From Macrostomum lignano (Eukaryota): a DNA stretch of 64,000 bases. The translations under genes and the position numbers were made by a program. Shown here one piece after another: positions 12,201-41,000 of the stretch (position 1 is its first letter; each line of letters opens with the position of its first letter). A model generated the notes under the pieces. That model did no database searches, was not told the origin of the DNA, and saw only the letters and a program-made list of their open reading frames with translations. The stretch lies in NCBI GenBank assembly GCA_002269645.1, contig NIVC01000910.1:136944-200943 (forward strand), written 5' to 3'.

Positions 12201-15200
12201 GAAACATTTTTTTGTATTTTTAAAGCCAAGGCTCATTTATTGGCTCTTACCCCCCAGCTTAAACCCTCCAACCGCGCCTTTCCATACTATCCCCCACCCC
12301 GCCCCAATTTCTAATTGGCAGCCTAAAGCTTCCATGTACATTTCAGTGGACTGGCTAATGTACATTACTGCTGAACCAATTAGCAAGCTGTTTACACCTC
12401 CAAGCTTGGGCTTCTAAACTTATCAAAGTCATTTCAGCCGCCTTTATTTTTATAAAATAACTTATGTATTCTTCTTTGCTACTGAACTGAAAGTAGAAAG
12501 CTGTTTTGCTAAGTATATATGCCTGAGTGGCCGCCTATCTAGATATTTCAGTGCTCGCACTTCTGCAGCCATTATTCAACACAGCTAGGGGTGCATACTG
12601 AACAAGTCTGCCATTGCACTGATCTAGTTTTGGTATTAACCAAAATCGTCTATATTTATCTGGTTAATCGCCGCACAGACAATCTCTAATGAAAATTCAA
12701 ATAAAATATTATTCGGATTTCTATTCTCAAAACTTCCACGTTACCCTTTCAGAAGAAGAGCAGCAGCGCAGGCAAAGAGGTGACGCAGAGGAGCCCAGCG
12801 GGTGAGTGGGGAACAGTCGAGGCAAGGAGCCTCAAATATTTGAAATTTTAGGGCTGCGGGCGACATGTCCCACAACCAGCGCTCACACAGGGTGTACAGC
12901 AGCCCTGACTTTCTAATCGTCGGGAATGTACACTCTTCAATGTACACACGAGGGTTTGGCCCTGATGGCTGTGAATCGCACACGACAACGCCATTTTTTG
13001 TACTCAAGCCCCAAATATGGCCGCTCATGGAATCAAACCAGGGGTCGAGGCGTGAGGAATTATTAAAAAAAACAGCGAATAACCTACTCTAGAATATCCC
13101 AGAAGTAGCCTCAGAAATGTCTCAGAGTAAGCCTAAGATTCCTAATAATTATTTCTCGGAAAAATAAGCACACAAATATCAACTTATACACCTTGAGAAG
13201 CTCGAGAGTAGCACCTACAATTACCCCAATAGTATCTTCTGAAATACCCACAGAAATACACACAGATGTACCCATAGAAATGCCAATCGAAGTGCATGTA
13301 CTCTCCCAAATACCCCAGAAAGAGTACCCCCGAAATACCCAAGAACACATACCCTCCGGAATACCCCAGAAGGAATACCCTCCAAAATACCCCAGAAAGA
13401 ATACCCTCCGAAATATCCAAGAACAAATACCCTCCGGAATACCCCAGAAAAAATACCCTTCGAAATATCTCAGAGGTAATACCCTTCAAAACACCTACGA
13501 ACAAATACCTTTCGAAACACCCCCAAAAATACCCTCAGAAATACCCCAAAAATAATACCCTCCTACCCAAAAAAATACCCTCCAACCTACCCCAGAAAGA
13601 ATACCCTCCAAAATACCCAAGAACAAATACCCTCCGGAATACCCCAGAAGGAATACCCTTCGAAATATCTCAGAGGTAATACCCTTAAAAACACCTACGA
13701 ACAAATACCTTTCGAAACACCCCCAAAAATACCCTCAGAAATACCCCAAAAAATAATACCCTCCTACCCGAAAAAATACCCTCCAAACTACCCCAGAAGA
13801 AGGCTAAAACACTGGGAAATTCCCCGCCCCTCCCCCACGCAGTAGCGGTGGCCGAACCTCCAGCGCTAAGCCGGCGCCGCTGCCGAAGACCAAGGCCGGC
13901 GCCGCGGTGGTCGACGACGGCAGCGGCAAGCGCGTCAGCGGGGTGATCATCGAGCGCGACCAGGACTCCGACGACGACCAGTTCGTGGTGGAGGAGGCGC
14001 CGCCAACCCTGCTAGCCGGCGGCCTAGGCGACGACGGCGGCGGCGGCCTCGACGACGACGAAGAAGGTCGCGACGAGCAGCACGGCGGGCTGGTGAAGGA
14101 GATGCTGAAGTCCAAGCAGGAGTTCAAGGACGCCAGCGGCGGCGCCAAGGACGCCGGCGGCAAGACGGTGCTGACCACCACAGACGCCAACAGGAAGCGG
14201 GAGAAGGCGGCCACGGCTAGGGAGATTGACAGGCTGAAGCAGCAGCTGCAGGCGCTGACCCGGGAGGCCAACCCGCTCGGCAAAGTCATCGACTACGTGC
14301 AGGAAGACCTGGACTCCATGTCAAAGGAGCTGGAGCGGTGGCGCGCCGAGACAAAAGAGGTCATGGCCCGGCTGAAGCAGGAGCAGAGGTACGAAATCCC
14401 ATAATATCTCTAATAATATTATGATCCCTGATCCCAAATATTCTCTGATCCCAAATACTCTCTGATCCCAAATGCTCTCTAATCCTAAATATTCCTTGAT
14501 CCCAAATATTCCCTCAAGCCAGATATTCCCTGATCCTAAATATTCCCTGATTCTAAATATTCCCTGATCCCAAATATTCCCTGATCCTAAATATTCCCTG
14601 ATCCCAAATATTCTTTGATCCCAAATACTCTCTGATCCCAAATGCTCTCTAATCCTAAATATTCCTTGATCCCAAATATTCCCTCAAGCCAGATATTCCC
14701 TGATCCTAATTATTCCCTGATTCTAAATATTCCCTGATCCCAAATATTCCCTGATTCTAAATATTCCCTGATCCTAAATATTCCCTGATCCCAAATATTC
14801 CCTGATTCTAAATATTCCCTGATCCTAAATATTCCCTGATCCCAAATATTCCCTGATCCTAAATATTCCCTGATCCCAAATATTCCCTGATCCTAAATAT
14901 TCCCTAAAGCCAGATGTTCCCTGATCCTAAATATTCACTGATCCCAAATATTCCCTGATCCTAAATATTCCCTGATCCCAAATATTCCTTGATCCTAAAT
15001 ATCCCCTCATCCCAGATATTCCCTGATCCTAAATATTCCCTGATTCTAAATATTCCCTGATCCCAAATATTCACTGATCCTAAATATTCCCTCAAGCCAG
15101 ATATTCCCTGATCCTATATATTCCCCGATTCTAAATATTCCCTGATCCCAAATATTCCTTGATCCTAAATATTCCCTCAAGCCAGATGTTCCCTGATCCT

Positions 15201-16310: not shown

Positions 16311-16809
16311 TTTGCAGAGAGCCAGCCGCATTCAACTGCATTCTCAGCTTGGCAACCGCCCCCCCCCTCACCCCTAGCAGAGTCGCACTTTGTCCAAAAA
16401 TCAAAATTTCTAACGTTTGCTAACTATCATCGAATGCTGAATATGCTACTAACAGCGAAAGCCATCAGCTAAGTAGTATAATAGATATATCTTACAGTCT
16501 ATATGTATACAATTAACGAGCAAGTTGTTAGCGCACCGCACTCTGCTGCACTTTCGATTTAAACAGCAGAGCCCCCTCAACACTCTTAATGACTTTGATT
16601 TACTCGTGAAATTGACTGAATTATGCTTTATTTTAGTTTACTACTCAAGTCTCAATGTCAATAAAAAGTAATAAATAATAGATGCCTGATGAATTCGACT
16701 CAAACACACGAGCATCTTGTCGGCTCAGCCAATTTAATGGAGCGAGCTGATTTTATACGGCTTCTGGTCTGAGCTTCTGGTTCGCCACTACCGCTTTCAT
16801 AGGACCCAC

Positions 16810-17090
16810 AACAGACATCCCAAACAGAACAGCGCCCTACAACAGACACTCCAAACAGAACAGCGCCCTACAACAGACACTCCAAACAGAACAGCGCCCG
16901 ACAACAGACACCCCAAACTGAACAGCGCCCGACAACAGACACCCCAAACAGAACAGCGCCCGACAACAGACACCCCAAACTGAACAGCGCCCGACAACAG
17001 ACACTCCAAACTGAACAGCGCCCTACAACAGACACCACAAACTGAACAGCGCCCTACAACAGACACTCCAAACGGAACAGCGCCCTACCA
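16810..17090 (+). repeat. 31-bp minisatellite (AACAGCGCCCTACAACAGACACCCCAAACTG)n, left arm
   Basis: About 9 copies. It is the reverse complement of the array at 17710-18595. Confidence 0.9.
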
Positions 17091-17709
17091 TGAAGCAAAT
17101 TTGACTAAAAAATTGTCATCAGCAGCATAGTTAGAAGCGAGACACTGAAAAACATCAACCCGTATTTCCCCAAACTCTTCTCCGCCCCCTAGCACAGAAA
17201 ATTTTCCAATTGCTGTCCTTCTAGGCAACTCGTGACGCGCAACAATCTTGGGCTGGCGCCAGCGCCTGCTAAAAATTCATTCTCAAAAGTAGGCCAGCTC
17301 GGGGATAAACAGTCGCGCAGGCGGATAATCTAGAGATGAGGGGGGGGGCGTCGCAGCGCCTACCTAATTGAAACTTCCGGGAGAACTTCGGGATCCGGGA
17401 TGCGGGCTCTGAGATAGATCCAACCCCCCCCCCCAGTGCTCAATACAGAAGCCTTCCACCCAAACTGCGCGACTCTTCAAAGCAGAAAACGAAGACGAAG
17501 GGAGGCAGGTGAAAAAGCCGGCAACGAAACAGTCGGAGTAGCTTTTGAGAGGGGCAACAGTCAGTCTGCTTTTGCGTGACCAACTGCCAAGATTCTCATG
17601 ACAAGCGTCTTTAGTTAAGGCGAAAAATTCAAAATAAGTTTCCGAAATGATTTTTTTGATAGAGCCAATCGATTCTAGACTTTGGTAAACTGACTGATCT
17701 AAAGTGGCT

Positions 17710-18595
17710 TCAGTTTAGGGTGTCTCTTGTAGGGTGCTGTTCAGTTTGGGGTGTCTGTCATAGGGCGCTGTTCAGTTTGGGGTGTCTGTTGTAGGGTGCT
17801 GTTCAGTTTGGGGTGTCTGATGTAGGGCGCTGTTCAGTTTGGAGTGTCTGTTGTAGGGCGCTGTTCAGTTTGTGGTGTCTGTTGTAGGGCGCTGTTCAGT
17901 TTGGGGTGTCTGTTGTAGGGTGCTGTTCAGTTTGGGGTGTCTGTCATAGGGCGCTGTTCAGTTTGGGGTGTCTGTTGTAGGGCGCTGTTCAGTTTGGGGT
18001 GTCTGTAGGGCGCTGTTCAGTTTGGGGTGTCTGTTGTAGGGCGCTGTTCAGTTTGGGGTGTCTGTAGGGCGCTGTTCAGTTTGGGGTGTCTGTAGGGCGC
18101 TGTTCTGTTTGGAGTGTCTGTTGTAGGGCGCTTTTCAGTTTGGGGTGTCTGTTGTAGGGCGCTGTTCAGTTTGGGGTGTCTGTTGTAGGACGCTGTTCAG
18201 TTTGGAGTGTCTGTTGTAGGGTGCTGTTCAGTTTGGGGTGTCTGTCATAGGGCGCTGTTCAGTTTGGGGTGTCTGTTGTAGGGCGCTGTTCAGTTTGGGG
18301 TGTCTGTTGTAGGGCGCTGTTCAGTTTGTGGTGTCTGTTGTAGGGCGCTGTTCAGTTTGGGGTGTCTGTTGTAGGACGCTGTTCAGTTTGGAGTGTCTGT
18401 TGTAGGGTGCTGTTCAGTTTGGGGTGTCTGTCATAGGGCGCTGTTCAGTTTGGGGAGTCTATTGTAGGGTGCTGTTCAGTTTGGGGTGTCTGTTGTAGGG
18501 TGCTGTTCAGTTTGGGGTGTCTGTTGTAGGGCGCTGTTCAGTTTGGGGTGTCTGTTGTAGGGCGCTGTTCAGTTTGGGGTGTCTGTTGTAGGGCT
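17710..18595 (-). repeat. The same 31-bp minisatellite in inverted orientation, right arm
   Basis: Unit CAGTTTGGGGTGTCTGTTGTAGGGCGCTGTT, roughly 29 copies. Confidence 0.9.
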
Positions 18596-19125
18596 GCTCC
18601 TAGGCGAGTTGCTGCTGGTAGGAGCAAGCCCTGTTGCTTTACCTGCCCCAATGACACATTGGGATTTACAATCAGATGGTGGGGCAACATGCGCTGCTGG
18701 AAATTTTTCAGCCAGATTCTCTCCAAACTGCCGAGCACCCATTTACTCACAGGCAACAATAGTTCATTGTTTGGGTAAACATTTTTTCTAGAAAAGCAGA
18801 ACTGAACTCAGACCGAGCCAGCAAGCAGACGGGAAGGAAGGGACAGGCAAACATCGTAAGCGACGAATTCTGAAGTGGGCAGCAGGCTGCTCACTGCTGC
18901 ATTCCCTGACATTTGGGAGGCCTCTTGAGAACCTGGGAATGGAAAGAGCCACAATTCCGCAGATCCCTAAAAGCTCCGTTTCTGGAGCGCCGCAGGAGAG
19001 CGAAACACTGCTTGTTCGCTCTTCAGGCACTGACCAGGGAGCACTAAGACAGAGATTCTGGAGTGGCGACTGAGCTGACAGCGGAATTCGTCAGAGTTCG
19101 TGTTGCTACAGGGATAACGTAGAAT

Positions 19126-19990
19126 CCAGACTTCTATCTTCAGGCGTCCCTGGTCCAACTCTCGTCATCAATCCCAGTAAGAGAGCTTTGCAGTTTCCAA
19201 TCCAGACTTCTATCTTCAGGCGTCCCTGGTCCAACTCTCGTCATCAATTCCAGTAAGAGAGCTTTGCAGTTTCCAATCCAGACTTCTATCTTCAGGCGTC
19301 CCTGGTCCAACTCTCGTCATCAATCCCAGTAAGAGAGCTTTGCAGTTTCCAATCCAGACTTCTATCTTTAGGCGTCCCTGGTCCAACTCTCGTCATCAAT
19401 CCCAGTAAGAGAGCTTTGCAGTTTCCAATCCAGACTTCTATCTTCAGGCGTCCCCGGTCCAACTCTCGTCATCAATCCCAGTAAGAGAGCTTTGCAGTTT
19501 CCAATCCAGACTTCTATCTTCAGGCGTCCCTGGTCCAACTCTCGTCATCAATCCCAGTAAGAGAGCTTTGCAGTTTCCAATCCAGACTTCTATCTTCAGG
19601 CGTCCCCGGTCCAACTCTCGTCATCAATCCCAGTAAGAGAGCTTTGCAGTTTCCAATCCAGACTTCTATCTTCAGGCGTCCCTGGTCCAACTCTCGTCAT
19701 CAATCCCAGTAAGAGAGCTTTGCAGTTTCCAATCCAGACTTCTATCTTCAGGCGTCCCCGGTCCAACTCTCGTCATCAATCCCAGTAAGAGAGCTTTGCA
19801 GTTTCCAATCCAGACTTCTATCTTCAGGCGTCCCTGGTCCAACTCTCGTCATCAATCTCAGTAAGAGAGCTTTGCAGTTTCCAATCCAGACTTCTATCTT
19901 CAGGCGTCCCCGGTCCAACTCTCGTCATCAATCCCAGTAAGAGAGCTTTGCAGTTTCCAATCCAGACTTCTATCCTCAGGCGTCCCTGGC
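19126..19990. repeat. 76-bp tandem repeat, about 11 highly homogeneous copies
   Basis: Unit starts recur at 19126, 19202, 19278 and onward. Confidence 0.95.
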
Positions 19991-20302
19991 CCAAGCTCTC
20001 CTGAATCCACTTTGTCATGTAGAAATGCTCCCCAGTCGCCGAGCTGGCTCCATCCTGCCTTCGCTCCTCGGCTGGCACAGATTGGCCCCGGTTGCGTCCC
20101 CTGAGAGGTCCCCCCGCCCGGTGACTAGCGAGATTTACCTGCAGCTCCAGCCCGAGTCGGCACTTCTTTCTCTCTCTTTGCTTTTTTCGCGAGCGAGACA
20201 CTCTTTATAAAGTTATTTCGCTCTCAACAAATTTTTGTTAGGCTAATTTTTAAATAACCCAGTCCAGCACTGTCTGTTTATCATTCTACTCCAGTGAGGA
20301 TT

Positions 20303-22164
20303 ATGAATTTTCTAGGAATTCGAGGCGCAGGAGCGGCCCTGCCACTGGTGCTGCTGATCGCTGCCGCTCAGCTACAAGTGGTGAGTGAGCCTTGCATTGC
20401 GGAGTGTGGAGGCTGGGATGTGGGCAGATTATGCGTAGCTATCCCAGATAGTTGCTAAGGAAGTGAAAATTCTGGCCTCAATGGAATCTGTGCTTGCGAA
20501 AGTTGCAGATAAATTCGGGGTATCAGAATAAAATCAAGTAGCAGAGTGACGAGACAAAATTCACGGTGTGAAAAGACTCTCCCTTCCCACCAAATTAGCG
20601 GAGTGACAAGACTCCATTATCAAATTAGTAAAATGACAAGACTGTGACACGATTTTTTGGCAGAGTGACAAGATTGGCTAATTGGTAGAGTGACAAGACT
20701 CTCCCTTCCCACCAAATTAGCGGAGTGACAAGACTCCATTATCAAATTAGTAAAATGACAAGACTGTGACACGATTTTTTGGCAGAGTGACAAGATTGGC
20801 TAATTGGTAGAGTGACAAGACTCTCCTAGCTAATTATCGGAGTGACAAGACTCCCCCAGCTAATTATAGCGGAGTGACAAGACTCCCCCAGCTAATTATC
20901 GGAGTGACAAGACTCCCCCAGCTAATTATCGGAGTGACAAGACTCTCCTAGCTAATTATCGGAGTGACAAGACTCCCCCCAGCTAGTTATAGCGGAGTGC
21001 CAAGACTCCCCCAGCTAATTATCGGAGTGACAAGACTCTTCTAGCTAATTATCGGAGTGACAAGACTCCCCCATCTAATTAGCGGAGTGACAAGACTCCC
21101 TCAGCTAATTATAGCGGAGTGACAAGACTCCCCCAGCTAATTAGCGGAGTGACAAGACTCCCCCAGCTAATTAGCGGAGTGACAAGACTCCCTCAGATAA
21201 TTATCGGAGTGACAAGACTCCCCCAGCTAATTATCGGAGTGACAAGATTCCCTCAGCTAATTATCGGAGTGACAAGATTCCCTCAGCTAATTATCGGAGT
21301 GACAAGACTCCCTCAGATAATTATCGGAGTGACAAGACTCCCTCAGCTAATTATCGGAGTGACAAGACTCCCCCAGCTAATTATCGGAGTGACAAGACTC
21401 CCCCAGCTAATTATCGGAGTGACAAGACTCCCCCAGCTAATTAGCGGAGTGACAAGACTCCCTCAGCTAATTATCGGAGTGACAAGACTCCCCCAGCTAA
21501 TTAGCGGAGTGACAAGACTCCCCCAGCTAATTAGCGGAGTGACAAGACTCCCTCAGCTAATTTTCGGAGTGACAAGACTCCCCCAGCTAATTATCGGAGT
21601 GACAAGACTCCCTCAGCTAATTATCGGAGTGACAAGACTCCCCCAGCTAATTATCAGAGTGACAAGACTCCCCCAGCTAATTATCGGAGTGACAAGACTC
21701 CCTCAGCTAATTATCGGAGTGACAAGACTCCCCCAGCTAATTAGCGGAGTGACAAGACTCCCCCCAGCTAATTATCGGAGTGACAAGACTCCCCCAGCTA
21801 ATTAGCGGAGTGACAAGATTCCCGCCCGATTCCGCAGTCGCAGTCGCGCAGTCTCCGACCATCGAGCTACTTCGAAGAGGACCAGCAGCTCATTGACGAC
21901 GATTCCAACGAATTTGCCGATTCCGACTGCGACGATCTTGACCCCGTCGACGACTGCGGAGACGACACCCGAAGGGAGCCGCCGGCCAGGGCTGACGACG
22001 ACTGGGTTCGCTCGGAGCCGTCGCGCCGCAGCGACCTCCGCAAGCGCTACGACCCGCTGCTGGCCATCCGACGTCGGCGAAACGGCGACGGCAGCGGCGA
22101 CCAACGCGGATTTCTCCGACAGACAAGCCGGCAGCGACGCTACGACCCGCTGCAGTTCATCTGA
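20303..22164 (+). CDS. Neuropeptide/prohormone precursor, 134 aa, two coding exons
   Basis: Exon 20303-20380 encodes MNFLGIRGAGAALPLVLLIAAAQLQV and ends at GTGAGT in phase 0. Exon 21838-22164 follows TTCCGCAG and encodes SQSRSLRPSSYFEEDQQLIDDDSNEFADSDCDDLDPVDDCGDDTRREPPARADDDWVRSEPSRRSDLRKR-YDPLLAI-RRRRNGDGSGDQRGFLRQTSRQRR-YDPLQFI*. The layout is a signal peptide, an acidic spacer and two similar peptides at basic cleavage sites. Confidence 0.8.
20545..21820. repeat. 30-bp minisatellite (GAGTGACAAGACTCCCCCAGCTAATTATCG)n filling the prohormone intron
   Basis: Directly visible. Older diverged units at 20545-20830 include an ~116-bp duplication. Confidence 0.95.
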
Positions 22165-22371
22165 CCGGCGGACAGCAGAGTCAGCGGCACGGCAGCGTAG
22201 AAAGAATATTTTCAATAACGGTTAAAAATGGAAAATTAAGGAATGGCGAAAAACTTACTTGGCTGAGAAACTTTGAGATGAAAGAAATACAAGCTGGAAT
22301 CGCTGCAGAAATTCAGACTGCGCGTTCGTATTCTGCAATTATTGCTTTTTGTCCACTTTTTACTGTTTGAA

Positions 22372-24990
22372 CTCATCTGTCTGAGTAGGATCTGGTGTAC
22401 ACCTAATGTGACTCATCTGTCTGAGTAGGATCTGGTGTACACCTAATGTGACTCATCTGTCTGAGTAGGATCTGGTGTACACCTAATGTGACTCATCTGT
22501 CTGAGTAGGTTCTGGTGTACACCTAATGTGACTCATCTGTCTGAGTAGGATCTGGTGTACACCTAATGTGACTCATCTGTCTGAGTAGGTTCTGGTGTGC
22601 ACCTAATGTGACTCATCTGCATAGGTAGGATCTGGTGTACACCTAATGTGACTCATCTGTCTGAGTAGGATCTGGTGTACACCTAATGTGACTCATCTGT
22701 CTGAGTAGGATCTGGTGTACACCTAATGTGACTCATCTGTCTGAGTAGGATCTGGTGTACACCTAATGTGACTCATCTGTCTGAGTAGGTTCTGGTGTAC
22801 ACCTAATGTGACTCATCTGTCTGAGTAGGTTCTGGTGTACACCTAATGTGACTCATCTGTCTGAGTAGGTTCTGGTGTACACCTAATGTGACTCATCTGT
22901 CTGAGTAGGTTCTGGTGTACACCTAATGTGACTCATCTGTCTGAGTAGGTTCTGGTGTACACCTAATGTGACTCATCTGTCTGAGTAGGTTCTGGTGTAC
23001 ACCTAATGTGACTCATCTGTCTGAGTAGGATCTGGTGTGCACCTAATGTGACTCATCTGTCTGAGTAGGTTCTGGTGTACACCTAATGTGACTCATCTGT
23101 CTGAGTAGGTTCTGGTGTACACCTAATGTGACTCATCTGTCTGAGTAGGTTCTGGTGTACACCTAATGTGACTCATCTGTCTGAGTAGGATCTGGTGTGC
23201 ACCTAATGTGACTCATCTGTCTGAGTAGGATCTGGTGTACACCTAATGTGACTCATCTGCCTGTCTAGGTTCTGGTGTACACCTAATGTGACTCATCTGT
23301 CTGAGTAGGATCTGGTGTGCACCTAATGTGACTCATCTGTCTGAGTAGGTTCTGGTGTACACCTAATGTGACTCATCTGCATAGGTAGGATCTGGTGTGC
23401 ACCTAATGTGACTCATCTGTCTGAGTAGGATCTGGTGTGCACCTAATGTGACTCATCTGTCTGAGTAGGATCTGGTGTGCACCTAATGTGACTCATCTGC
23501 CTGAGTAGGATCTGGTGTACACCTAATGTGACTCATCTGTCTGAGTAGGATCTGGTGTACACCTAATGTGACTCATCTGTCTGAGTAGGTTCTGGTGTAC
23601 ACCTAATGTGACTCATCTGCATAGGTAGGATCTGGTGTACACCTAATGTGACTCATCTGTCTGAGTAGGATCTGGTGTACACCTAATGTGACTCATCTGC
23701 ATAGGTAGGATCTGGTGTACACCTAATGTGACTCATCTGTCTGAGTAGGATCTGGTGTGCACCTAATGTGACTCATCTGTCTGAGTAGGATCTGGTGTGC
23801 ACCTAATGTGACTCATCTGCATAGGTAGGTTCTGGTGTACACCTAATGTGACTCATCTGTCTGAGTAGGTTCTGGTGTACACCTAATGTGACTCATCTGT
23901 CTGAGTAGGATCTGGTGTACACCTAATGTGACTCATCTGCCTGTCTAGGTTCTGGTGTACACCTAATGTGACTCATCTGTCTGAGTAGGATCTGGTGTAC
24001 ACCTAATGTGACTCATCTGTCTGAGTAGGATCTGGTGTACACCTAATGTGACTCATCTGTCTGAGTAGGATCTGGTGTACACCTAATGTGACTCATCTGT
24101 CTGAGTAGGATCTGGTGTATACCTAATGTGACTCATCTGTCTGAGTAGGATCTGGTGTGCACCTAATGTGACTCATCTGTCTGAGTAGGATCTGGTGTGC
24201 ACCTAATGTGACTCATCTGCATAGGTAGGTTCTGGTGTACACCTAATGTGACTCATCTGTCTGAGTAGGTTCTGGTGTACACCTAATGTGACTCATCTGT
24301 CTGAGTAGGATCTGGTGTACACCTAATGTGACTCATCTGCCTGTCTAGGTTCTGGTGTACACCTAATGTGACTCATCTGTCTGAGTAGGATCTGGTGTAC
24401 ACCTAATGTGACTCATCTGTCTGAGTAGGATCTGGTGTACACCTAATGTGACTCATCTGTCTGAGTAGGTTCTGGTGTACACCTAATGTGACTCATCTGC
24501 ATAGGTAGGTTCTGGTGTACACCTAATGTGACTCATCTGTCTGAGTAGGTTCTGGTGTACACCTAATGTGACTCATCTGTCTGAGTAGGATCTGGTGTAC
24601 ACCTAATGTGACTCATCTGCCTGTCTAGGTTCTGGTGTACACCTAATGTGACTCATCTGTCTGAGTAGGATCTGGTGTACACCTAATGTGACTCATCTGT
24701 CTGAGTAGGATCTGGTGTACACCTAATGTGACTCATCTGTCTGAGTAGGTTCTGGTGTACACCTAATGTGACTCATCTGTCTGAGTAGGATCTGGTGTAC
24801 ACCTAATGTGACTCATCTGTCTGAGTAGGATCTGGTGTACACCTAATGTGACTCATCTGTCTGAGTAGGTTCTGGTGTACACCTAATGTAACTCATCTGC
24901 CTGTCTAGGTTCTGGTGTACACCTAATGTGACTCATCTGTCTGAGTAGGATCTGGTGTACACCTAATGTGACTCATCTGCATAGGTAGGT
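22372..24990. repeat. 40-bp satellite (ACTCATCTGTCTGAGTAGGATCTGGTGTACACCTAATGTG)n, about 65 copies
   Basis: Directly visible. Each unit junction spells TGACTCA. Confidence 0.97.
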
Positions 24991-25299
24991 TCTAAAGTAT
25001 AACTGTGATAGAAAAAAAATTGTGGCGATGCATTGAGTGTCAAAATTGAAATCTGTTGTGCCGTTTCACTTCTAGCCCAGCATAGTGCTGTGAGAAATTA
25101 TTCTACGGACGGCAGCTCAGGTATCGGCCGCTCACCTAATCTCATTAGATTTGCTGTATCAACTGTATGCTCGTATAAGCTTTGTGAACTGGCAGTGTTA
25201 GTACTTGCGCACTTGTGACTAGCTGCGGAGGATGGCAGAAGAGAGCGCCCTATTCTTTTAACAAGTTCACAAGTGATTTCAAATTCCAAGCCTTCGCAC

Positions 25300-32092: not shown

Positions 32093-35000
32093 TCACACGC
32101 CCCTAGGCTTGAACAAGCCCTGCATCTGACTGTACGGAGCTGGCAAGCTGTAAGTCGACTGAACGAACGAAAAATGACCCACATTGGACTCTACTGGGTG
32201 CTGCTGCCGACTTGACGACTGCGAAGATGGTTGCGGCGATGTCTCCGGCGGCACCTGCGACTGCTGAGCGATTCCCGGCATGAGAAACGACGGCCCTGTG
32301 CTGCTTGTTGGCGACTGCCTGTACCAGGGCATGCTGTACATGTAGGCTGCAGCAGCTGCCGCCGCTGCGGCGGCTTCACCCTGCTGCGGCTTGCTGAGCT
32401 TCAGCAGCTCGGGAGGCGTCCTCGGCCGTCCGGGCGGACTGCTGTCCGACTGTCCGCCCGCGCCGGCATCGTCCGTCACACCGGCGCCGCCCTGGTCGCG
32501 TTTGAACTTCGTGCGTCGGTTTTGGAACCAGACTTTCACCTGTTGCAGCAGTGAAATAGGTCGTGAGACATTTGCAACGAACTATGACGTCAGCGGTGCA
32601 AGCGGGAAATTTATTAAAATAATTGAAATTGACTACTTTTCCGTTTAATTAGTTTCGCACCTGGGTTTCAGACAGGCCCAGGGCTTTAGCCAGGTCGTTT
32701 CTCTCCCTGCCCACCATGTAGTGATTGTGCCTGAACGCCTCCTCCAGTCGGACCAGCTGATCGCTGGAAAATGTCGTCCGAGCTCGTTTTGGCCTGTCGA
32801 GATCCAGCGCTTTGGGGAAGATCATTTCCTTCAGTACGCCGTTCGAGTCTGGAAGGGAAATGGGGATGCGATCGCTAAGTTTGAAGGGTCTTGGGACTCG
32901 TAGAACTTGTGTGTCCTATGTAAGAGTTCATATCTTGACATAAAGAGTCTGGAGTTTTGTATTAAAGACATTTTTTAGTCTTGGACTGAAGTAGCTGTGC
33001 AGTATTAGATCAAAGAATTTGTATCTAACATAGAAGGCATGTTTCTTGGATCAAAGATATGTGACTTGGATCAAAGACGTGTCTTGGATCAGAGGCTTGT
33101 CTTGGATCAAAGGCTTGTGTCTTGGATCATAGGCTTGTGTCTTGGATCAAAGGCTTGTGTCTTGGATCAAAGGCATGTGTCTTGGATCAGAGGCATGTGT
33201 CTTGGATCAAAGGCTTGTGTCTTGGATCAGAGGCATGTGTCTTGGATCAAAGGCTTGTGTCTTGGATCAAAGGCATGTGTCTTGGATCAGAGGCTTGTGT
33301 CTTGGATCAAAGGCTTGTCTTGGATCAGAGGCATGTGTCTTGGATCAGAGGCATGTGTCTTGGATCAGAGGCATGTGTCTTGGATCAGAGGCATGTGTCT
33401 TGGATCAAAGGCTTGTGTCTTGGATCAGAGGCTTGTGTCTTGGATCAAAGGCATGTGTCTTGGTTCAAAGGCTTGTGTCTTGGATCAAAGGCTTGTGTCT
33501 TGGATCAAAGGCTTGTGTCTTGGATCAAAGGCTTGTGTCTTGGATCAAAGGCTTGTGTCTTGGATCAAAGGCTTGTGTCTTGGATCAAAGGCTTGTGTCT
33601 TGGATCAAAGGCTTGTGTCTTGGATCAAAGGCTTGTGTCTTGGATCAAAGGCTTGTGTCTTGGATCAAAGGCTTGTGTCTTGGATCAGAGGCATGTGTCT
33701 TGGATCAAAGGCTTGTGTCTTGGATCAAAGGCATGTGTCTTGGATCAGAGGCTTGTGTCTTGGATCAAAGGCTTGTCTTGGATCAGAGGCATGTGTCTTG
33801 GATCAGAGGCATGTGTCTTGGATCAGAGGCATGTGTCTTGGATCAGAGGCTTGTGTCTTGGATCATAGGCTTGTGTCTTGGATCGAAGGCATGTGTCTTG
33901 GATCAGAGGCATGTGTCTTGGATCAAAGGCTTGTGTCTTGGATCAGAGGCATGTGTCTTGGATCAAAGGCTTGTGTCTTGGATCAAAGGCATGTGTCTTG
34001 GATCAGAGGCTTGTGTCTTGGATCAAAGGCTTGTCTTGGATCAGAGGCATGTGTCTTGGATCAGAGGCATGTGTCTTGGATCAGAGGCATGTGTCTTGGA
34101 TCAGAGGCATGTGTCTTGGATCAAAGGCTTGTGTCTTGGATCAGAGGCTTGTGTCTTGGATCGAAGGCATGTGTCTTGGATCAAAGGCTTGTGTCTTGGA
34201 TCAAAAGCTTGTGTCTTGGATCAAAGGCTTGTGTCTTGGATCAAAGGCATGTGTCTTGGATCAAAGGCATGTGTCTTGGATCAAAGGCTTGTGTCTTGGA
34301 TCAAAGGCTTGTGTCTTGGATCAAAGGCTTGTGTCTTGGATCAAAGGCTTGTGTCTTGGATCAAAGGCATGTGTCTTGGATCAGAGGCTTGTGTCTTGGA
34401 TCAAAGGCTTGTCTTGGATCAGAGGCATGTGTCTTGGATCAGAGGCATGTGTCTTGGATCAGAGGCATGTGTCTTGGATCAGAGGCATGTGTCTTGGATC
34501 AAAGGCTTGTGTCTTGGATCAGAGGCTTGTGTCTTGGATCAAAGGCATGTGTCTTGGATCAAAGGCTTGTGTCTTGGATCATAGGCTTGTGTCTTGGATC
34601 AAAGGCTTGTGTCTTGGATCAAAGGCTTGTGTCTTGGATCGAAGGCATGTGTCTTGGATCAAAGGCTTGTGTCTTGGATCAAAGGCTTGTGTCTTGGATC
34701 AAAGGCTTGTGTCTTGGATCAAAGGCATGTGTCTTGGATCAAAGGCTTGTGTCTTGGATCAAAGGCTTGTGTCTTGGATCAAAGGCTTGTGTCTTGGATC
34801 AAAGGCTTGTGTCTTGGATCAAAGGCATGTGTCTTGGATCAGAGGCTTGTGTCTTGGATCAAAGGCTTGTCTTGGATCAGAGGCATGTGTCTTGGATCAG
34901 AGGCATGTGTCTTGGATCAAAGGCTTGTGTCTTGGATCAGAGGCTTGTGTCTTGGATCAAAGGCATGTGTCTTGGATCAAAGGCTTGTGTCTTGGATCAT

Positions 35001-38000
35001 AGGCTTGTGTCTTGGATCAAAGGCTTGTGTCTTGGATCAAAGGCTTGTGTCTTGGATCGAAGGCATGTGTCTTGGATCAAAGGCTTGTGTCTTGGATCAA
35101 AAGCTAGTGTCTTGGATCAAAGGCTTGTGTCTTGGATCAAAGGCTTGTGTCTTGGATCAAAGGCATGTGTCTTGGATCAAAGGCTTGTGTCTTGGATCAA
35201 AGGCTTGTGTATTGGATCAAAGGCATGTGTCTTGGATCAGAGGCATGTGTCTTGGATCAAAGGCTTGTGTCTTGGATCAGAGGCATGTGTCTTGGATCAA
35301 AGGCTTGTGTCTTGGATCAAAGGCATGTGTCTTGGATCAGAGGCTTGTGTCTTGGATCGAAGGCATGTGTCTTGGATCAAAGGCTTGTGTCTTGGATCAA
35401 AAGCTTGTGTCTTGGATCAAAGGCTTGTGTCTTGGATCAAAGGCATGTGTCTTGGATCAAAGGCATGTGTCTTGGATCAAAGGCTTGTGTCTTGGATCAG
35501 AGGCTTGTGTCTTGGATCGAAGGCATGTGTCTTGGATCAAAGGCTTGTGTCTTGGATCAAAAGCTTGTGTCTTGGATCAAAGGCTTGTGTCTTGGATCAA
35601 AGGCATGTGTCTTGGATCAAAGGCATGTGTCTTGGATCAGAGGCATGTGTCTTGGATCAAAGGCTTGTGTCTTGGATCAAAGGCTTGTGTCTTGGATCAA
35701 AGGCTTGTGTCTTGGATCAAAGGCATGTGTCTTGGATCAAAGGCATGTGTCTTGGATCAAAGGCTTGTGTCTTGGATCAGAGGCTTGTGTCTTGGATCGA
35801 AGGCATGTGTCTTGGATCAAAGGCTTGTGTCTTGGATCAAAAGCTTGTGTCTTGGATCAAAGGCTTGTGTCTTGGATCAAAGGCATGTGTCTTGGATCAA
35901 AGGCATGTGTCTTGGATCAAAGGCTTGTGTCTTGGATCAAAGGCTTGTGTCTTGGATCAAAGGCTTGTGTCTTGGATCAAAGGCTTGTGTCTTGGATCAA
36001 AGGCATGTGTCTTGGATCAGAGGCTTGTGTCTTGGATCAAAGGCTTGTCTTGGATCAGAGGCATGTGTCTTGGATCAGAGGCATGTGTCTTGGATCAGAG
36101 GCATGTGTCTTGGATCAGAGGCATGTGTCTTGGATCAAAGGCTTGTGTCTTGGATCAGAGGCTTGTGTCTTGGATCAAAGGCATGTGTCTTGGATCAAAG
36201 GCTTGTGTCTTGGATCATAGGCTTGTGTCTTGGATCAAAGGCTTGTGTCTTGGATCAAAGGCTTGTGTCTTGGATCGAAGGCATGTGTCTTGGATCAAAG
36301 GCTTGTGTCTTGGATCAAAGGCTTGTGTCTTGGATCAAAGGCTTGTGTCTTGGATCAAAGGCATGTGTCTTGGATCAAAGGCTTGTGTCTTGGATCAAAG
36401 GCTTGTGTCTTGGATCAAAGGCTTGTGTCTTGGATCAAAGGCTTGTGTCTTGGATCAAAGGCATGTGTCTTGGATCAGAGGCTTGTGTCTTGGATCAAAA
36501 GCTTGTCTTGGATCAGAGGCATGTGTCTTGGATCAGAGGCATGTGTCTTGGATCAGAGGCATGTGTCTTGGATCAGAGGCATGTGTCTTGGATCAAAGGC
36601 TTGTGTCTTGGATCAGAGGCTTGTGTCTTGGATCAAAGGCATGTGTCTTGGATCAAAGGCTTGTGTCTTGGATCATAGGCTTGTGTCTTGGATCAAAGGC
36701 TTGTGTCTTGGATCAAAGGCTTGTGTCTTGGATCGAAGGCATGTGTCTTGGATCAAAGGCTTGTGTCTTGGATCAAAAGCTTGTGTCTTGGATCAAAGGC
36801 TTGTGTCTTGGATCAAAGGCTTGTGTCTTGGATCAAAGGCATGTGTCTTGGATCAAAGGCTTGTGTCTTGGATCAAAGGCTTGTGTATTGGATCAAAGGC
36901 ATGTGTCTTGGATCAGAGGCATGTGTCTTGGATCAAAGGCTTGTGTCTTGGATCAGAGGCATGTGTCTTGGATCAAAGGCTTGTGTCTTGGATCAAAGGC
37001 ATGTGTCTTGGATCAGAGGCATGTGTCTTGGATCAAAGGCTTGTCTTGGATCAGAGGCATGTGTCTTGGATCAGAGGCATGTGTCTTGGATCAAAGGCAT
37101 GTGTCTTGGATCAAAGGCTTGTGTCTTGGATCAAAGGCATGTGTCTTGGATCAAAGGCATGTTTCTTGGATCAAAGGCTTGTGTCTTGGATCAAAGGCTT
37201 GTGTCTTGGATCAAAGGCTTGTGTCTTGGATCAAAGGCTTGTGTCTTGGATCAAAGGCTTGTGTCTTGGATCAAAGGCTTGCGTCTTGGATCAAAGGCTT
37301 GTGTCTTGGATCAAAGGCTTGTGTCTTGGATCAAAGGCTTGTGTCTTGGATCAAAGGCTTGTGTCTTGGATCAAAGGCTTGTGTCTTGGATCAAAGGCTT
37401 GTGTCTTGGATCAAAGGCTTGTGTCTTGGATCAAAGGCTTGTGTCTTGGATCAAAGGCTTGTGTCTTGGATCAAAGGCTTGTGTCTTGGATCAAAGGCTT
37501 GTGTCTTGGATCAAAGGCTTGTGTCTTGGATCAAAGGCTTGTGTCTTGGATCAGAGGCATGTGTCTTGGATCAAAGGCTTGTGTCTTGGATCAGAGGCAT
37601 GTGTCTTGGATCAAAGGCTTGTGTCTTGGATCAAAGGCATGTGTCTTGGATCAGAGGCTTGTGTCTTGGATCATAGGCTTGTGTCTTGGATCGAAGGCAT
37701 GTGTCTTGGATCAGAGGCATGTGTCTTGGATCAAAGGCTTGTGTCTTGGATCAGAGGCATGTGTCTTGGATCAAAGGCTTGTGTCTTGGATCAAAGGCAT
37801 GTGTCTTGGATCAGAGGCTTGTGTCTTGGATCAAAGGCTTGTCTTGGATCAGAGGCATGTGTCTTGGATCAGAGGCATGTGTCTTGGATCAGAGGCATGT
37901 GTCTTGGATCAGAGGCATGTGTCTTGGATCAAAGGCTTGTGTCTTGGATCAGAGGCTTGTGTCTTGGATCGAAGGCATGTGTCTTGGATCAAAGGCTTGT

Positions 38001-41000
38001 GTCTTGGATCAAAAGCTTGTGTCTTGGATCAAAGGCTTGTGTCTTGGATCAAAGGCATGTGTCTTGGATCAAAGGCATGTGTCTTGGATCAAAGGCTTGT
38101 GTCTTGGATCAAAGGCTTGTGTCTTGGATCAAAGGCTTGTGTCTTGGATCAAAGGCTTGTGTCTTGGATCAAAGGCATGTGTCTTGGATCAGAGGCTTGT
38201 GTCTTGGATCAAAGGCTTGTCTTGGATCAGAGGCATGTGTCTTGGATCAGAGGCATGTGTCTTGGATCAGAGGCATGTGTCTTGGATCAGAGGCATGTGT
38301 CTTGGATCAAAGGCTTGTGTCTTGGATCAGAGGCTTGTGTCTTGGATCAAAGGCATGTGTCTTGGATCAAAGGCTTGTGTCTTGGATCATAGGCTTGTGT
38401 CTTGGATCAGAGGCTTGTGTCTTGGATCAAAGGCTTGTGTCTTGGATCAAAGGCTTGTGTCTTGGATCAAAGGCTTGTGTCTTGGATCAAAGGCTTGTGT
38501 CTTGGATCAAAGACTTGTGTCTTGGATCAAAGGCATGTGTCTTGGATCAAAGGCTTGTGTCTTGGATCAAAGGCTTGTGTCTTGGATCAAAGGCTTGTGT
38601 CTTGGATCAAAGGCTTGTGTCTTGGATCAAAGGCATGTGTCTTGGATCAGAGGCTTGTGTCTTGGATCAAAGGCTTGTCTTGGATCAGAGGCATGTGTCT
38701 TGGATCAGAGGCATGTGTCTTGGATCAGAGGCATGTGTCTTGGATCAGAGGCATGTGTCTTGGATCAAAGGCTTGTGTCTTGGATCAGAGGCTTGTGTCT
38801 TGGATCAAAGGCATGTGTCTTGGATCAAAGGCTTGTGTCTTGGATCATAGGCTTGTGTCTTGGATCAAAGGCTTGTGTCTTGGATCAAAGGCTTGTGTCT
38901 TGGATCGAAGGCATGTGTCTTGGATCAAAGGCTTGTGTCTTGGATCAAAAGCTTGTGTCTTGGATCAAAGGCTTGTGTCTTGGATCAAAGGCTTGTGTCT
39001 TGGATCAAAGGCATGTGTCTTGGATCAAAGGCTTGTGTCTTGGATCAAAGGCTTGTGTATTGGATCAAAGGCATGTGTCTTGGATCAGAGGCATGTGTCT
39101 TGGATCAAAGGCTTGTGTCTTGGATCAGAGGCATGTGTCTTGGATCAAAGGCTTGTGTCTTGGATCAAAGGCATGTGTCTTGGATCAGAGGCATGTGTCT
39201 TGGATCAAAGGCTTGTCTTGGATCAGAGGCATGTGTCTTGGATCAGAGGCATGTGTCTTGGATCAAAGGCATGTGTCTTGGATCAGAGGCTTGTGTCTTG
39301 GATCAAAGGCTTGTGTCTTGGATCAGAGGCTTGTGTCTTGGATCAAAGGCATGTGTCTTGGATCAAAGGCTTGTGTCTTGGATCATAGGCTTGTGTCTTG
39401 GATCAAAGGCTTGTGTCTTGGATCAAAGGCTTGTGTCTTGGATCGAAGGCATGTGTCTTGGATCAAAGGCTTGTGTCTTGGATCAAAAGCTTGTGTCTTG
39501 GATCAAAGGCTTGTGTCTTGGATCAAAGGCATGTGTCTTGGATCAAAGGCATGTGTCTTGGATCAAAGGCTTGTGTCTTGGATCAAAGGCTTGTGTCTTG
39601 GATCAAAGGCTTGTGTCTTGGATCAAAGGCTTGTGTCTTGGATCAAAGGCATGTGTCTTGGATCAGAGGCTTGTGTCTTGGATCAAAGGCTTGTCTTGGA
39701 TCAGAGGCATGTGTCTTGGATCAGAGGCATGTGTCTTGGATCAGAGGCATGTGTCTTGGATCAGAGGCATGTGTCTTGGATCAAAGGCTTGTGTCTTGGA
39801 TCAGAGGCTTGTGTCTTGGATCAAAGGCATGTGTCTTGGATCAAAGGCTTGTGTCTTGGATCATAGGCTTGTGTCTTGGATCAAAGGCTTGTGTCTTGGA
39901 TCAAAGGCTTGTGTCTTGGATCAAAAGCTTGTGTCTTGGATCAAAGGCTTGTGTCTTGGATCAAAGGCTTGTGTCTTGGATCAAAGGCATGTGTCTTGGA
40001 TCAAAGGCTTGTGTCTTGGATCAAAGGCTTGTGTCTTGGATCAAAGGCTTGTGTCTTGGATCATAGGCTTGTGACATAGCTAGTAAACTTTCAAGAATTT
40101 AGTCTGGAATCAAATGGATGGAAAATGGTAGGTATGTAAGCATTTGGAACAGATTCAAATCCAGCAGAAACCACTGCTGACGTGCGGGAAATTGAGTAGT
40201 AAAAATGAAAAGGACTCCGGGGGCACAGCAGGGGGGAGCAAGGCAATTTTGATAATTACCTTTGTCTCGATCCATCCAAGGAAACTGGCAACGAGAATTC
40301 CTAACCAAAAGCTCTTAACCAAAAGCTCATATTTGCAAGATACAATAAAAAGCTCACAGCAGTTCTCCCTCAAGATACATGTAGATTCGATGCTTTTTTG
40401 CGACAATTTTTTTAAACAGTTCTGACTCTCTGACCCTGACAGCAGCCGTGTGACAGTCGCGCGTATTGAGCGTGCATCTCTTTACCTTTCTAATTCCCTC
40501 CTAAGCAGAAGCTTCACTACAAATGTCGGTATTTTATTTGATTTGAATTTTTCTACCGATGCCAGCTGGAATCCTGGTTTTCAATTTGGCATCCCGAGTT
40601 TGGAACCAGGATGCCGAATATGACATTGCGATTCTGGCGCTCAAAAGCCCAGTTCGGCATATCGCGATTAATTAATTGATTGTCCATCGGATATAGCGAA
40701 TTTGGTAACTGTTTTTATTTGATAATTGATGAGTTTGTCAGCGATAAACACACTTCACTGACAGCCGTTTTGCTTAATTAGTTTTTTGCCGCGCTGGAGC
40801 TGCTCTGCCAATTTAAACAAAAGACGATGGGGGACCCCTTTCAAATGGAGCGGAGTGGACCTGTTAATTGAAAACTGCCTGTTTGCTTCAGCCAGCATTG
40901 TCAATACATTGTTAATGCGGCTCTTTTTTAAATAGCTATTGCTTTTAAAAGCAGCAAGTGCCGAAACAACTGATAAAGCCATTATGCAGATTGAAAATGC

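Follow-up and report, generated by a model that had tools for sequence, protein, structure and literature searches.

The locus lies in a window of 64,000 nucleotides of Macrostomum lignano contig NIVC01000910.1 (positions 136,944 to 200,943 of the forward strand), in which positions 20303–22164 hold two exons that are joined in phase 0 and encode a protein of 134 amino acids (Table 1). The stop-free translation of exon 2 runs SQSRSL...RKRYDPLLAIRRRR...RQRRYDPLQFI*. An original prediction, made from the letters of this stretch, had proposed two phase-0 exons separated by an intron of 30-bp repeats, and this model agrees with the GT..AG splice sites, with the open translation and with the deposited RNA-seq-based coding sequence. 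Its description of the gene as unannotated is wrong for the public record: GenBank entry PAA74970.1, 'hypothetical protein BOX15_Mlig001801g3', carries the identical 134-aa model over the identical 1862-bp span. Three loci, g1, g2 and g3, carry Mlig001801 in the deposited record, each as a hypothetical protein, and Mlig001801.g3 is the one in the window. The Mlig_3_7 annotation was built from RNA-seq and transcriptome assemblies only, with ORFs called by TransDecoder (PMC5730564), and the 20380/21838 junction is therefore supported by transcripts.

Mlig001801.g3 is a real, transcribed two-exon M. lignano gene, and its base composition sets the exons (64% GC) apart from the intron and flanks (41–50%). 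The GC contents at the first, second and third codon positions of exon 2 are 0.70, 0.49 and 0.77, the same pattern as in a bona fide AIG2/GGCT-like coding ORF of the window, and this correct pattern is seen in the proposed frame alone. ORF length by itself says little here, because several frames of the GC-rich exon 2 are open. An antisense ORF of 137 amino acids (21802–22215) was rejected as the coding frame, having no Pfam match, no transcript-based model and the wrong codon-position GC; an alternative-frame ORF of 110 amino acids was discarded on the last two of these grounds. The original prediction had remarked that the coding frame is missing from the ORF track, and exon 2 indeed contains no in-frame ATG, GTG or TTG, its frame being absent from the mechanical ORF list even at 20 amino acids. 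No Pfam family was found in the 134-aa protein at E ≤ 0.1, no Mlig001801 entry was found in the supplements of four M. lignano papers, and literature string searches for YDPLQFI/YDPLLAI and 'Mlig001801' found no relevant paper.

Table 1 Features of the Mlig001801.g3 locus, in positions of the window.
Feature	Positions	Strand	Details
TATAAA, candidate TATA box	20206–20211	+	97 nt 5' of ATG; sequence reading and pattern scan; putative promoter element
Exon 1, coding part	20303–20380	+	Codons 1–26, MNFLGIRGAGAALPLVLLIAAAQLQV; equals PAA74970.1 residues 1–26; signal peptide plus 4 residues
Predicted signal peptide	20303–20368	+	Residues 1–22; n-region Arg7, h-region AALPLVLLIAAA; likely cleavage at AAA/Q, predicted by the -3/-1 rule
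Single phase-0 intron	20381–21837	+	1457 bp, GTGAGT...CCGCAG; sequence reading and comparison with paralogous loci
122-bp higher-order repeat	20568–20854		2.4 copies, 5' end of intronic array; Tandem Repeats Finder
30-bp minisatellite	20810–21823		GAGTGACAAGACTCCCCCAGCTAATTATCG, 33.5 copies, 92% matches; Tandem Repeats Finder
Exon 2, coding part	21838–22164	+	Codons 27–134 and stop; encodes entire propeptide
Acidic Asp-rich spacer	21838–22038	+	Residues 27–93; Cys57 and Cys66; internal RR at 71–72 and 89–90
RKR processing site (predicted)	22039–22047	+	Residues 94–96, before peptide 1
Predicted peptide 1, YDPLLAI	22048–22068	+	Residues 97–103; free acid; calculated [M+H]+ 804.4502
RRRR processing site (predicted)	22069–22080	+	Residues 104–107; fits furin-type R-X-K/R-R
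Linker peptide	22081–22128	+	Residues 108–123, NGDGSGDQRGFLRQTS; calculated [M+H]+ 1694.7841
RQRR processing site (predicted)	22129–22140	+	Residues 124–127; R-X-R-R type
Predicted peptide 2, YDPLQFI	22141–22164	+	Residues 128–134, then TGA; [M+H]+ 895.4560
Internal duplication, copy 2	22138–22188	+	Begins at the Arg codon preceding Tyr, spans the peptide and extends into the present 3' UTR; copy 1 at 22045–22098

The N-terminal region of the protein reaches a hydropathy peak of 2.68 over residues 11–22 (Kyte-Doolittle 11-residue means, a heuristic) and turns hydrophilic after residue 22, in windows with starts up to residue 30. Two UniProt models with a near-identical N-terminus (P14L) bear the name 'Secreted protein'. 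D, R and S predominate in exon 2, where Asp accounts for 21 of the 108 residues. R-X-K/R-R is the furin-type consensus. The C-terminus of YDPLQFI is set by the stop codon, and neither peptide is followed by a Gly that could serve as amidation donor. The sequence thus contains what the original prediction had described, namely a putative signal peptide, a spacer rich in Asp and containing two Cys, and dibasic-flanked YDPLLAI and YDPLQFI that both lack a C-terminal Gly. The prediction had also recognised the hallmark of a prohormone convertase substrate, and the generic anatomy of such a precursor appears to be present in the 134-aa protein: a signal peptide (by the heuristic above), peptides bracketed by multibasic sites, a small size, and no enzymatic or transmembrane domain. 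Generic multi-copy prohormones processed by PC2 and carboxypeptidase E share this plan, their peptides lying between KR, RR or RXRR sites behind a signal peptide and an acidic spacer. Unlike generic multi-copy prohormones, the M. lignano precursor has no amidation signal and only two short predicted products.

The repetition of the peptide unit was assessed at the protein and DNA levels. An identical 4-mer directly behind two dibasic sites arose in 48 of 200,000 residue shuffles of exon 2, and in the six-frame translation of the window the event at this locus is the sole one outside repetitive, low-complexity Arg/Lys-rich sequence. At the protein level, the repeated YDPL pattern exceeds what chance would produce. 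Local alignment of positions 22045–22098 with 22138–22188 gave a score of 43, compared with 14.9 ± 2.2 for shuffled sequences (n = 1000; maximum, 26). Because the units form an internal duplication at the DNA level, the repetition of YDPL counts as one evolutionary event and not as two independent ones. Both duplicates have the same 16 nt for R-Y-D-P-L, the remainder having diverged with indels, and the TGA that follows peptide 2 aligns with CGA, the Arg codon that opens RRRR in the other duplicate.

At the paralogous loci g1 and g2, neither the ORF nor the splice sites are disrupted, and both peptides and every basic site are preserved. Three amino-acid changes distinguish the loci; they fall in the core of the signal peptide, in the acidic spacer and in the linker. 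Codon differences between the three loci comprise three non-synonymous and two synonymous ones, and because only 5 codons differ, dN/dS between the loci is without power and purifying selection cannot be demonstrated from it. The flanks of the three loci are ~5% diverged, with indels, and the introns differ two-fold in length.

The original prediction had likened the peptides to a remembered [F/Y]DPxxF family of planarians and schistosomes. This family is real and comprises the products of spp-15, spp-16 and npp-26, whereas the M. lignano peptides miss its FDPI core and its C-terminal aromatic residue. Smed-spp-15 yields FDPIQFamide and Smed-spp-16 yields QFDPIMY, both of them confirmed by MS and expressed in the cephalic ganglia and nerve cords. 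The Sma/Sja-npp-26 peptides, encoded in Schistosoma by Smp_071050, include NFDPILF and SYFDPIIY. In S. mansoni they are MS-confirmed free acids that mark a neuron cluster and are candidate ligands of SmGPCR9, and RNAi of npp-26 gives a motility phenotype. The Koziol 2016 catalogue reportedly covers 12 parasitic species, M. lignano not being among them.

Comparison with 77 peptide units from 15 relatives found the FDPI core in 69 of them, YDPL in none and an extra Ile in none; in 63 of 69 cases KR, RK or a stop came directly after the family 6-mer. Within the core, D and P are identical between FDPI and the M. lignano YDPL, and the exchanges of F for Y and I for L are conservative. A family peptide ends at the aromatic residue in position 6, followed by a basic site, a stop or Gly, whereas both M. 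lignano peptides carry an extra Ile, and in peptide 1 Ala occupies the position of the family's Phe or Tyr. YDPLQF shares four identical and two conservative positions with planarian FDPIQF. The precursors differ further in copy number, with two peptides in M. lignano and 3–10 in the FDPI relatives, and in the long Asp-rich spacer with two Cys, which is particular to M. lignano. Similarity to the FDPIxF/Y precursors beyond the motif was not detectable.

The M. lignano gene and the FDPIxF/Y precursors have several architectural features in common. Both are small precursors (100–150 aa) with a signal peptide, and in both, dibasic sites enclose repeated peptides of 6–8 residues built on an aromatic-Asp-Pro-Ile/Leu core. 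Mature npp-26 and spp-16 peptides are not amidated but free acids, as the M. lignano peptides are predicted to be in keeping with their lack of Gly. The last peptide adjoins the stop codon in each case, as YDPLQFI in M. lignano and as EHFDPIIY (Sma), EYFDPIIY (Sja) and QFDPIMY (Smed-spp-16) in the relatives. A single phase-0 intron, with two exons of which the first corresponds approximately to the signal peptide, is shared with npp-26 of S. mansoni and Paragonimus westermani, exon 1 having 26 codons in M. lignano and P. westermani alike and 31 in S. mansoni, and exon 2 encoding the remainder of the precursor. This common architecture is weak evidence of orthology, because an intron just after the signal peptide is frequent in secreted-peptide genes.

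Homology searches outside M. lignano, by a word-indexed search and by an exhaustive HMMER search of 1.84 billion representatives, found no homologues; the only matches were the M. lignano copies and low-complexity sequences. Orphan status is what one would expect of a neuropeptide precursor, since full-length sequence comparison typically fails to reveal homologues of such proteins. When M. lignano was searched with an FDPI-family profile, no canonical FDPI precursor turned up and Mlig001801 was the sole candidate; the M. lignano proteins matched this profile only because one of them had been included in it. A reconstructed Smed-spp-15 used as a single query was uninformative, giving weak, irrelevant matches (nematode NLP-like proteins and an ENA fragment), the planarian protein being absent from the database. 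Since the peptides miss the FDPI core and the C-terminal aromatic end, membership of the FDPIxF/Y family stands as a resemblance and is not demonstrated.

Taken together, we consider that Mlig001801 probably encodes a real, expressed and secreted convertase substrate, which most likely gives rise to neuropeptides and, given the precursor and gene architecture it shares with the FDPIxF/Y family, may be a macrostomid relative of npp-26 that has diverged. The N-terminal signal peptide would direct the protein to the ER and would be cleaved after Ala22. A PC2/furin-type convertase of the regulated secretory pathway would then cut after RKR96, RRRR107 and RQRR127, and a carboxypeptidase E-like enzyme would remove the basic residues. 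The predicted products are the two non-amidated heptapeptides YDPLLAI and YDPLQFI together with the acidic propiece and the linker peptide. By analogy with spp-15, spp-16 and npp-26, we infer that the precursor is expressed in neurons and that its peptides would most likely act as neuropeptides at a rhodopsin-type GPCR. A PC2 homologue of M. lignano is expressed in the nervous system, and its knock-down is lethal (PMC4490696).

A secreted product of another kind would share much of this anatomy. A layout of signal peptide, acidic propiece and basic sites is also known from non-neural secretory precursors, and Mlig001801 may belong to a non-neural gland (seminal-fluid, adhesive, mucous or defensive), with the acidic Cys-containing domain or other cleavage products as the functional part and the YDPL units as a by-product of a recent internal duplication. 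The origin of both units in a single DNA duplication and the departure from the FDPI core fit such a gland product, but the stretch for R-Y-D-P-L has stayed identical while the duplicate downstream of it diverged with indels, and both units sit exactly between R-X-K/R-R sites or a stop codon. Mlig001801 was, moreover, not found in the supplements of a seminal-fluid ISH screen, and its sequence and architecture resemble those of a family with proven neuronal expression, so that we regard a glandular, non-neural role as unlikely. We judge it distinctly improbable that the locus is an orphan ORF confined to this lineage and devoid of any selected function, that is, a transcribed, GC-rich, repeat-embedded locus with a TransDecoder-called ORF whose prohormone features are fortuitous. 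The failure to find homologues outside M. lignano or a Pfam domain, the openness of exon 2 in several frames, the uninformative substitution counts and a genome saturated with repeats and duplications would all suit a fortuitous ORF. Against it stand the codon-position GC, which is correct in the proposed frame only, the canonical signal-peptide exon joined in phase to exon 2, and a motif pattern that is improbable by chance. The ORF has also stayed intact at three loci despite the divergence of their flanks and the unequal length of their introns.

Two further readings concern the affinity of the peptides. In C. elegans, the NLP-12 peptides DYRPLQFamide and DGYRPLQFamide are ligands of CKR-2 (PMC3527849). 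The string Y-x-P-L-Q-F is common to NLP-12 and the M. lignano gene, YDPLQF and YRPLQF agreeing in five of six residues in a likeness checked at the level of the peptide string only. The NLP-12 precursor, like Mlig001801, carries two related short peptides. An assignment to this CCK/sulfakinin-like type in place of npp-26 nevertheless seems extremely improbable: the M. lignano peptides have an extra Ile and no Gly as amidation donor, whereas NLP-12 precursors read ...YRPLQFG, the charge at position 2 is reversed (D versus R), YDPLLAI matches poorly, and a match of six residues has no statistical weight, HMMER having found no precursor homology. A bolder proposal, which we rate as very improbable, sees in Mlig001801 the true macrostomorphan orthologue of npp-26/spp-15/spp-16 and in Y-D-P-L-Q-F a bridge between FDPIQF(amide) and the nematode NLP-12 peptide YRPLQFamide; the FDPI peptides, labelled 'flatworm-specific', would then constitute the platyhelminth branch so far missing from the bilaterian CCK/sulfakinin-type system. 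True orthology would place the origin of FDPI signalling at the base of Rhabditophora, and with the CCK/sulfakinin bridge an SmGPCR9-type receptor would represent the corresponding receptor lineage.

If the favoured reading of Mlig001801 as a secreted neuropeptide precursor were confirmed, a functional label would be given to an M. lignano gene whose deposited name is merely 'hypothetical protein', in the only flatworm model for which transgenesis is known to be routine. Confirmation would also open a free-living, genetically tractable entry to a family whose npp-26 has recently been linked to a GPCR, motility and gonad function, and would indicate the extent to which the FDPI core, otherwise rigid in this family, can drift. 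By itself, the finding is an incremental annotation and not a new principle.

The introns of the two paralogous loci measure 694 and 664 bp and use the same splice sites as the 1457-bp intron in the window, and the number of minisatellite repeat-core copies varies between the three loci (38, 13 and 12). Three frameshifted UniProt models were rejected as possible divergent paralogues or pseudogenes; they represent the same DNA read in shifted frames, from the older and less accurate ML2 assembly. The UniProt names attached to these models, 'Kinesin motor domain-containing protein' and 'Death inducer-obliterator 1', are unfit for such short sequences and look like misnomers.

The two exons of Mlig001801 g3, the gene under study, splice into a product of 134 aa whose anatomy is most likely that of a secreted convertase substrate. 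The original prediction of two phase-0 exons around a 30-bp-repeat intron agrees with the translation, the splice sites and the repeat analysis, and the translated protein contains the anticipated Asp-rich spacer with two Cys residues as well as the KR-YDPLLAI-RRRR and RR-YDPLQFI-stop arrangements. The exon-2 frame is indeed absent from the ORF track; it has no ATG, GTG or TTG and is for that reason missing from mechanical ORF lists, even at 20 aa. Tandem acceptors lie 6 nt apart at 21832-21843 (CGCAG/TCGCAG/TCG), and splicing at the second AG (21842-21843) would keep the frame but drop two codons, Ser-Gln; exon 2 of the deposited model starts at 21838. With the intron retained, the exon-1 frame (20294-20458) would continue to a stop at 20456-20458, giving an ORF of 54 aa, or 51 aa if counted from the ATG, that would keep the signal peptide and end in a 4-Cys tail (…VSEPCIAECGGWDVGRLCVAIPDSC).

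Features of Mlig001801 g3 (window coordinates) and its 134-aa product (residue numbers).
Feature	Position	Strand	Remarks
Exon 1	20303-20380	+	26 codons from ATG at 20303, MNFLGIRGAGAALPLVLLIAAAQLQV; then GTGAGT donor
Intron	20381-21837	+	Phase 0; CCGCAG acceptor
122-bp higher-order repeat	20568-20854		Within intron
30-bp minisatellite	20810-21823		Within intron; 33.5 copies, 92% matches
Exon 2	21838-22164	+	Stop-free frame to TGA at 22162-22164
Hydrophobic segment	N-terminus of product
Asp-rich stretch			21 D in 108 exon-2 residues; includes Cys57 and Cys66
RKR	94-96		Before YDPLLAI
RRRR	104-107		After YDPLLAI
Linker			16 residues between RRRR and RQRR
RQRR	124-127		Before YDPLQFI; stop codon directly after YDPLQFI

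The signal peptide is supported as a prediction by Arg7 in the n-region, a mean hydropathy of 2.68 across the 12-residue h-region, an AAA/Q site that fits the -3/-1 rule, and the label 'Secreted protein' on UniProt models sharing a near-identical N-terminus. No Pfam domain was found in the 134-aa protein. Around both peptides, the basic sites follow the R-X-K/R-R consensus of furin- and PC-type enzymes. Convertase cleavage at these multibasic sites, followed by carboxypeptidase trimming, would release YDPLLAI and YDPLQFI as free acids; neither peptide has a C-terminal Gly, as originally noted, and therefore no amidation is predicted. Expression of the gene would be neuronal, and the M. lignano PC2 homologue is expressed in the nervous system, its knock-down being lethal (PMC4490696).

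The top database matches of the protein are Macrostomum lignano proteins. A cluster look-up revealed that the gene, originally described as unannotated, is already deposited as an identical model, PAA74970.1 ('hypothetical protein BOX15_Mlig001801g3'), on contig NIVC01000910.1 (Mlig_3_7, GCA_002269645.1); the deposited gene spans 1862 bp, and its locus matches window 17303-25164 at every base. The gene is therefore annotated, though with no function assigned. Wudarski et al. 2017 (PMC5730564) describe the Mlig_3_7 GenBank annotation as based on RNA-seq assemblies alone, both genome-guided and de novo, in which TransDecoder called the ORFs; the 20380/21838 splice is thus transcript-supported. 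Two further loci, g1 and g2 (PAA67536.1 and PAA89378.1), encode the 134-aa protein with three substitutions (P14L, P62S and S112G) and keep both peptides, every basic site and both splice sites unchanged. Their introns measure 694 and 664 bp versus 1457 bp in the window, with 13 and 12 minisatellite repeat cores versus 38, and their flanks are ~94-95% identical to the window. The presence of three gene copies fits expectation, as chromosomes are duplicated in the sequenced DV1 line (PMC5730564). The minisatellite copy number thus differs about three-fold among three paralogous or allelic loci whose flanking exons are ~98% identical. Four UniProt models of the same gene (P0002, P0003, P0004 and P0006) were considered as diverged paralogues and rejected, because they stem from the older ML2 assembly and read the gene with a shifted frame or an extension. 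Two of them, A0A1I8F7B4 and A0A1I8FTW2 (P0004 and P0006; 180 and 183 aa), are named 'Kinesin motor domain-containing protein' and 'Death inducer-obliterator 1', names that do not suit the sequences and look like propagated misannotations.

The gene model is thus public, and the prohormone reading that yields YDPLLAI and YDPLQFI appears to be unpublished: literature searches for both peptide strings and 'Mlig001801' gave no relevant match. A 2009 flatworm catalogue reportedly made use of M. lignano ESTs; the 2016 catalogue reportedly covered 12 parasitic species and left M. lignano out. The prohormone reading is a sound, incremental annotation of a functionally unannotated gene.

An identical 4-mer directly after two dibasic sites arose in 48 of 200,000 residue shuffles of exon 2, and YDPL is the sole such event outside repetitive low-complexity Arg/Lys-rich sequence in a six-frame translation of the whole window. 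The GC content at codon positions 1/2/3 of the proposed frame (0.70/0.49/0.77) matches the pattern of the reference, the AIG2/GGCT-like ORF at 47956-48579, which represents the one clearly conserved single-exon gene in the window (0.64/0.47/0.73); overall GC is 64% in the exons versus 41-50% in the intron and flanks. Both peptide units form a DNA-level internal duplication (22045-22098 and 22138-22188) with an alignment score of 43, whereas 1000 shuffles gave 14.9 +/- 2.2 and never exceeded 26. The stretch of 16 nt that codes for R-Y-D-P-L is identical between units, the next two codons (LA versus QF) show 4 mismatches over 6 positions, the Ile codon is shared, and the copies diverge, with indels, further downstream. 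At 22162-22188, the unit-2 TGA stop aligns with the CGA for the first Arg of RRRR in unit 1, a CpG-type C>T difference, and the start of the 3' UTR, its first ~25 nt, is therefore a decayed linker copy. The ancestral precursor may conceivably have been longer, with a third segment.

The duplication pattern is mildly suggestive of constraint on RYDPL..I, yet it reflects one duplication event, and a non-neural gland secretion would carry the YDPL repeat as an incidental duplication. We consider such a secretion unlikely, and a functionless orphan ORF on this transcribed locus more doubtful still. Against both stand the signal-peptide exon in phase with exon 2, the correct codon-position GC pattern, the ORF kept intact at all three loci despite divergence and length change in their non-coding parts, and the placement of both units exactly between multibasic sites or the stop codon. 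Mlig001801 is probably a prohormone or neuropeptide precursor, and may be related, in diverged form, to a known flatworm family.

The planarian and schistosome [F/Y]DPxxF peptides invoked in the original prediction are real, and are encoded by Smed-spp-15, Smed-spp-16 and Sma/Sja-npp-26 (PMC2953531). Smed-spp-15 yields FDPIQFamide (8 copies) and FDPIMFamide, confirmed by MS (Collins et al. 2010, PMC2953531), and its expression sites are the cephalic ganglia, ventral nerve cords, sub-epidermal cells and pharynx. Smed-spp-16 yields the free acid QFDPIMY, its last copy C-terminal, and npp-26 yields NFDPILF, SYFDPILF, SYFDPIIY and EHFDPIIY-stop (PMC2953531). Work on cercariae confirmed the npp-26 peptides in free-acid form (PMC9495596), and npp-26 is the unique marker of a miracidial neuron cluster (PMC11349301). 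SmGPCR9 has NFDPILF as a candidate ligand, and knock-down of npp-26 by RNAi leads to curling and lower motility (PMC13367911).

An exhaustive HMMER search returned no homologues beyond M. lignano. Small neuropeptide precursors usually lack detectable whole-sequence homology. A profile search built on the spp-15, spp-16 and npp-26 precursors (alignment A1) picked up schistosomatid relatives along with others from Paragonimus, Mesocestoides and Schmidtea. From M. lignano it gave only the Mlig001801 proteins, themselves part of the profile, so that no canonical FDPI precursor is visible there. Among 15 non-Macrostomum relatives, 69 of 77 units carry the FDPI core; of these 69, 63 continue straight from the 6-mer into KR, RK or a stop, and none has a YDPL core or an extra hydrophobic residue before the dibasic site. 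The M. lignano peptides share D-P with the family, and F>Y and I>L are conservative replacements, but there is an additional Ile; peptide 2 (YDPLQFI) matches planarian FDPIQF well, whereas peptide 1 (YDPLLAI) lacks the aromatic position 6. A single phase-0 intron separates exon 1 from the rest of the coding sequence in S. mansoni npp-26 (31 codons, exactly the signal peptide), P. westermani (26 codons) and M. lignano (26 codons), an architecture that is supportive but not specific. The proposed likeness holds for D-P and architecture, but the FDPI core and aromatic C-terminal end, both defining traits of the family, proved lacking on testing, and we therefore do not file the gene as a family member. 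By analogy, we conclude that it probably works like an npp-26-type precursor and is the sole M. lignano candidate for the family. In an environmental data set, a JGI metagenome contig of 904 nt (P0019) encodes a 186-aa precursor with ten YFDPIMY/YFDPILY units, an npp-26/spp-16-type gene from a presumably free-living animal.

YDPLQF is also identical at 5 of 6 positions to YRPLQFamide of C. elegans NLP-12, but differs in amidation and in the charge at position 2. The resemblance is only a lead, and an NLP-12/CCK-type relationship is very improbable.

The window is saturated with tandem arrays (42 rows with a score of at least 200; Tandem Repeats Finder, window 1-64000), for example at 33034-40073, 22371-24979 and 19123-20000, and includes 353 copies of a 20-bp unit in a 7-kb array. 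The gene is directly flanked by a 2.6-kb array of a 40-bp unit on its downstream side and by a 76-bp array on its upstream side, a repeat context that recurs at the paralogous loci. The 31-bp-unit arrays at 16808-17088 and 17709-18594 form an inverted pair ~620 bp apart, their consensus units being mutual reverse complements with one mismatch. An exon-sized ORF at 13907-14404 (+) matches Pfam MIP-T3_C (TRAF3IP1/IFT54 C-terminal region; E = 5.8e-26), which places a ciliary intraflagellar-transport gene ~6 kb upstream of Mlig001801. At 47956-48579 (+), a 207-aa ATG-to-stop ORF with AIG2_2/GGACT domains (E = 7.5e-25) represents a gamma-glutamylcyclotransferase-like gene.
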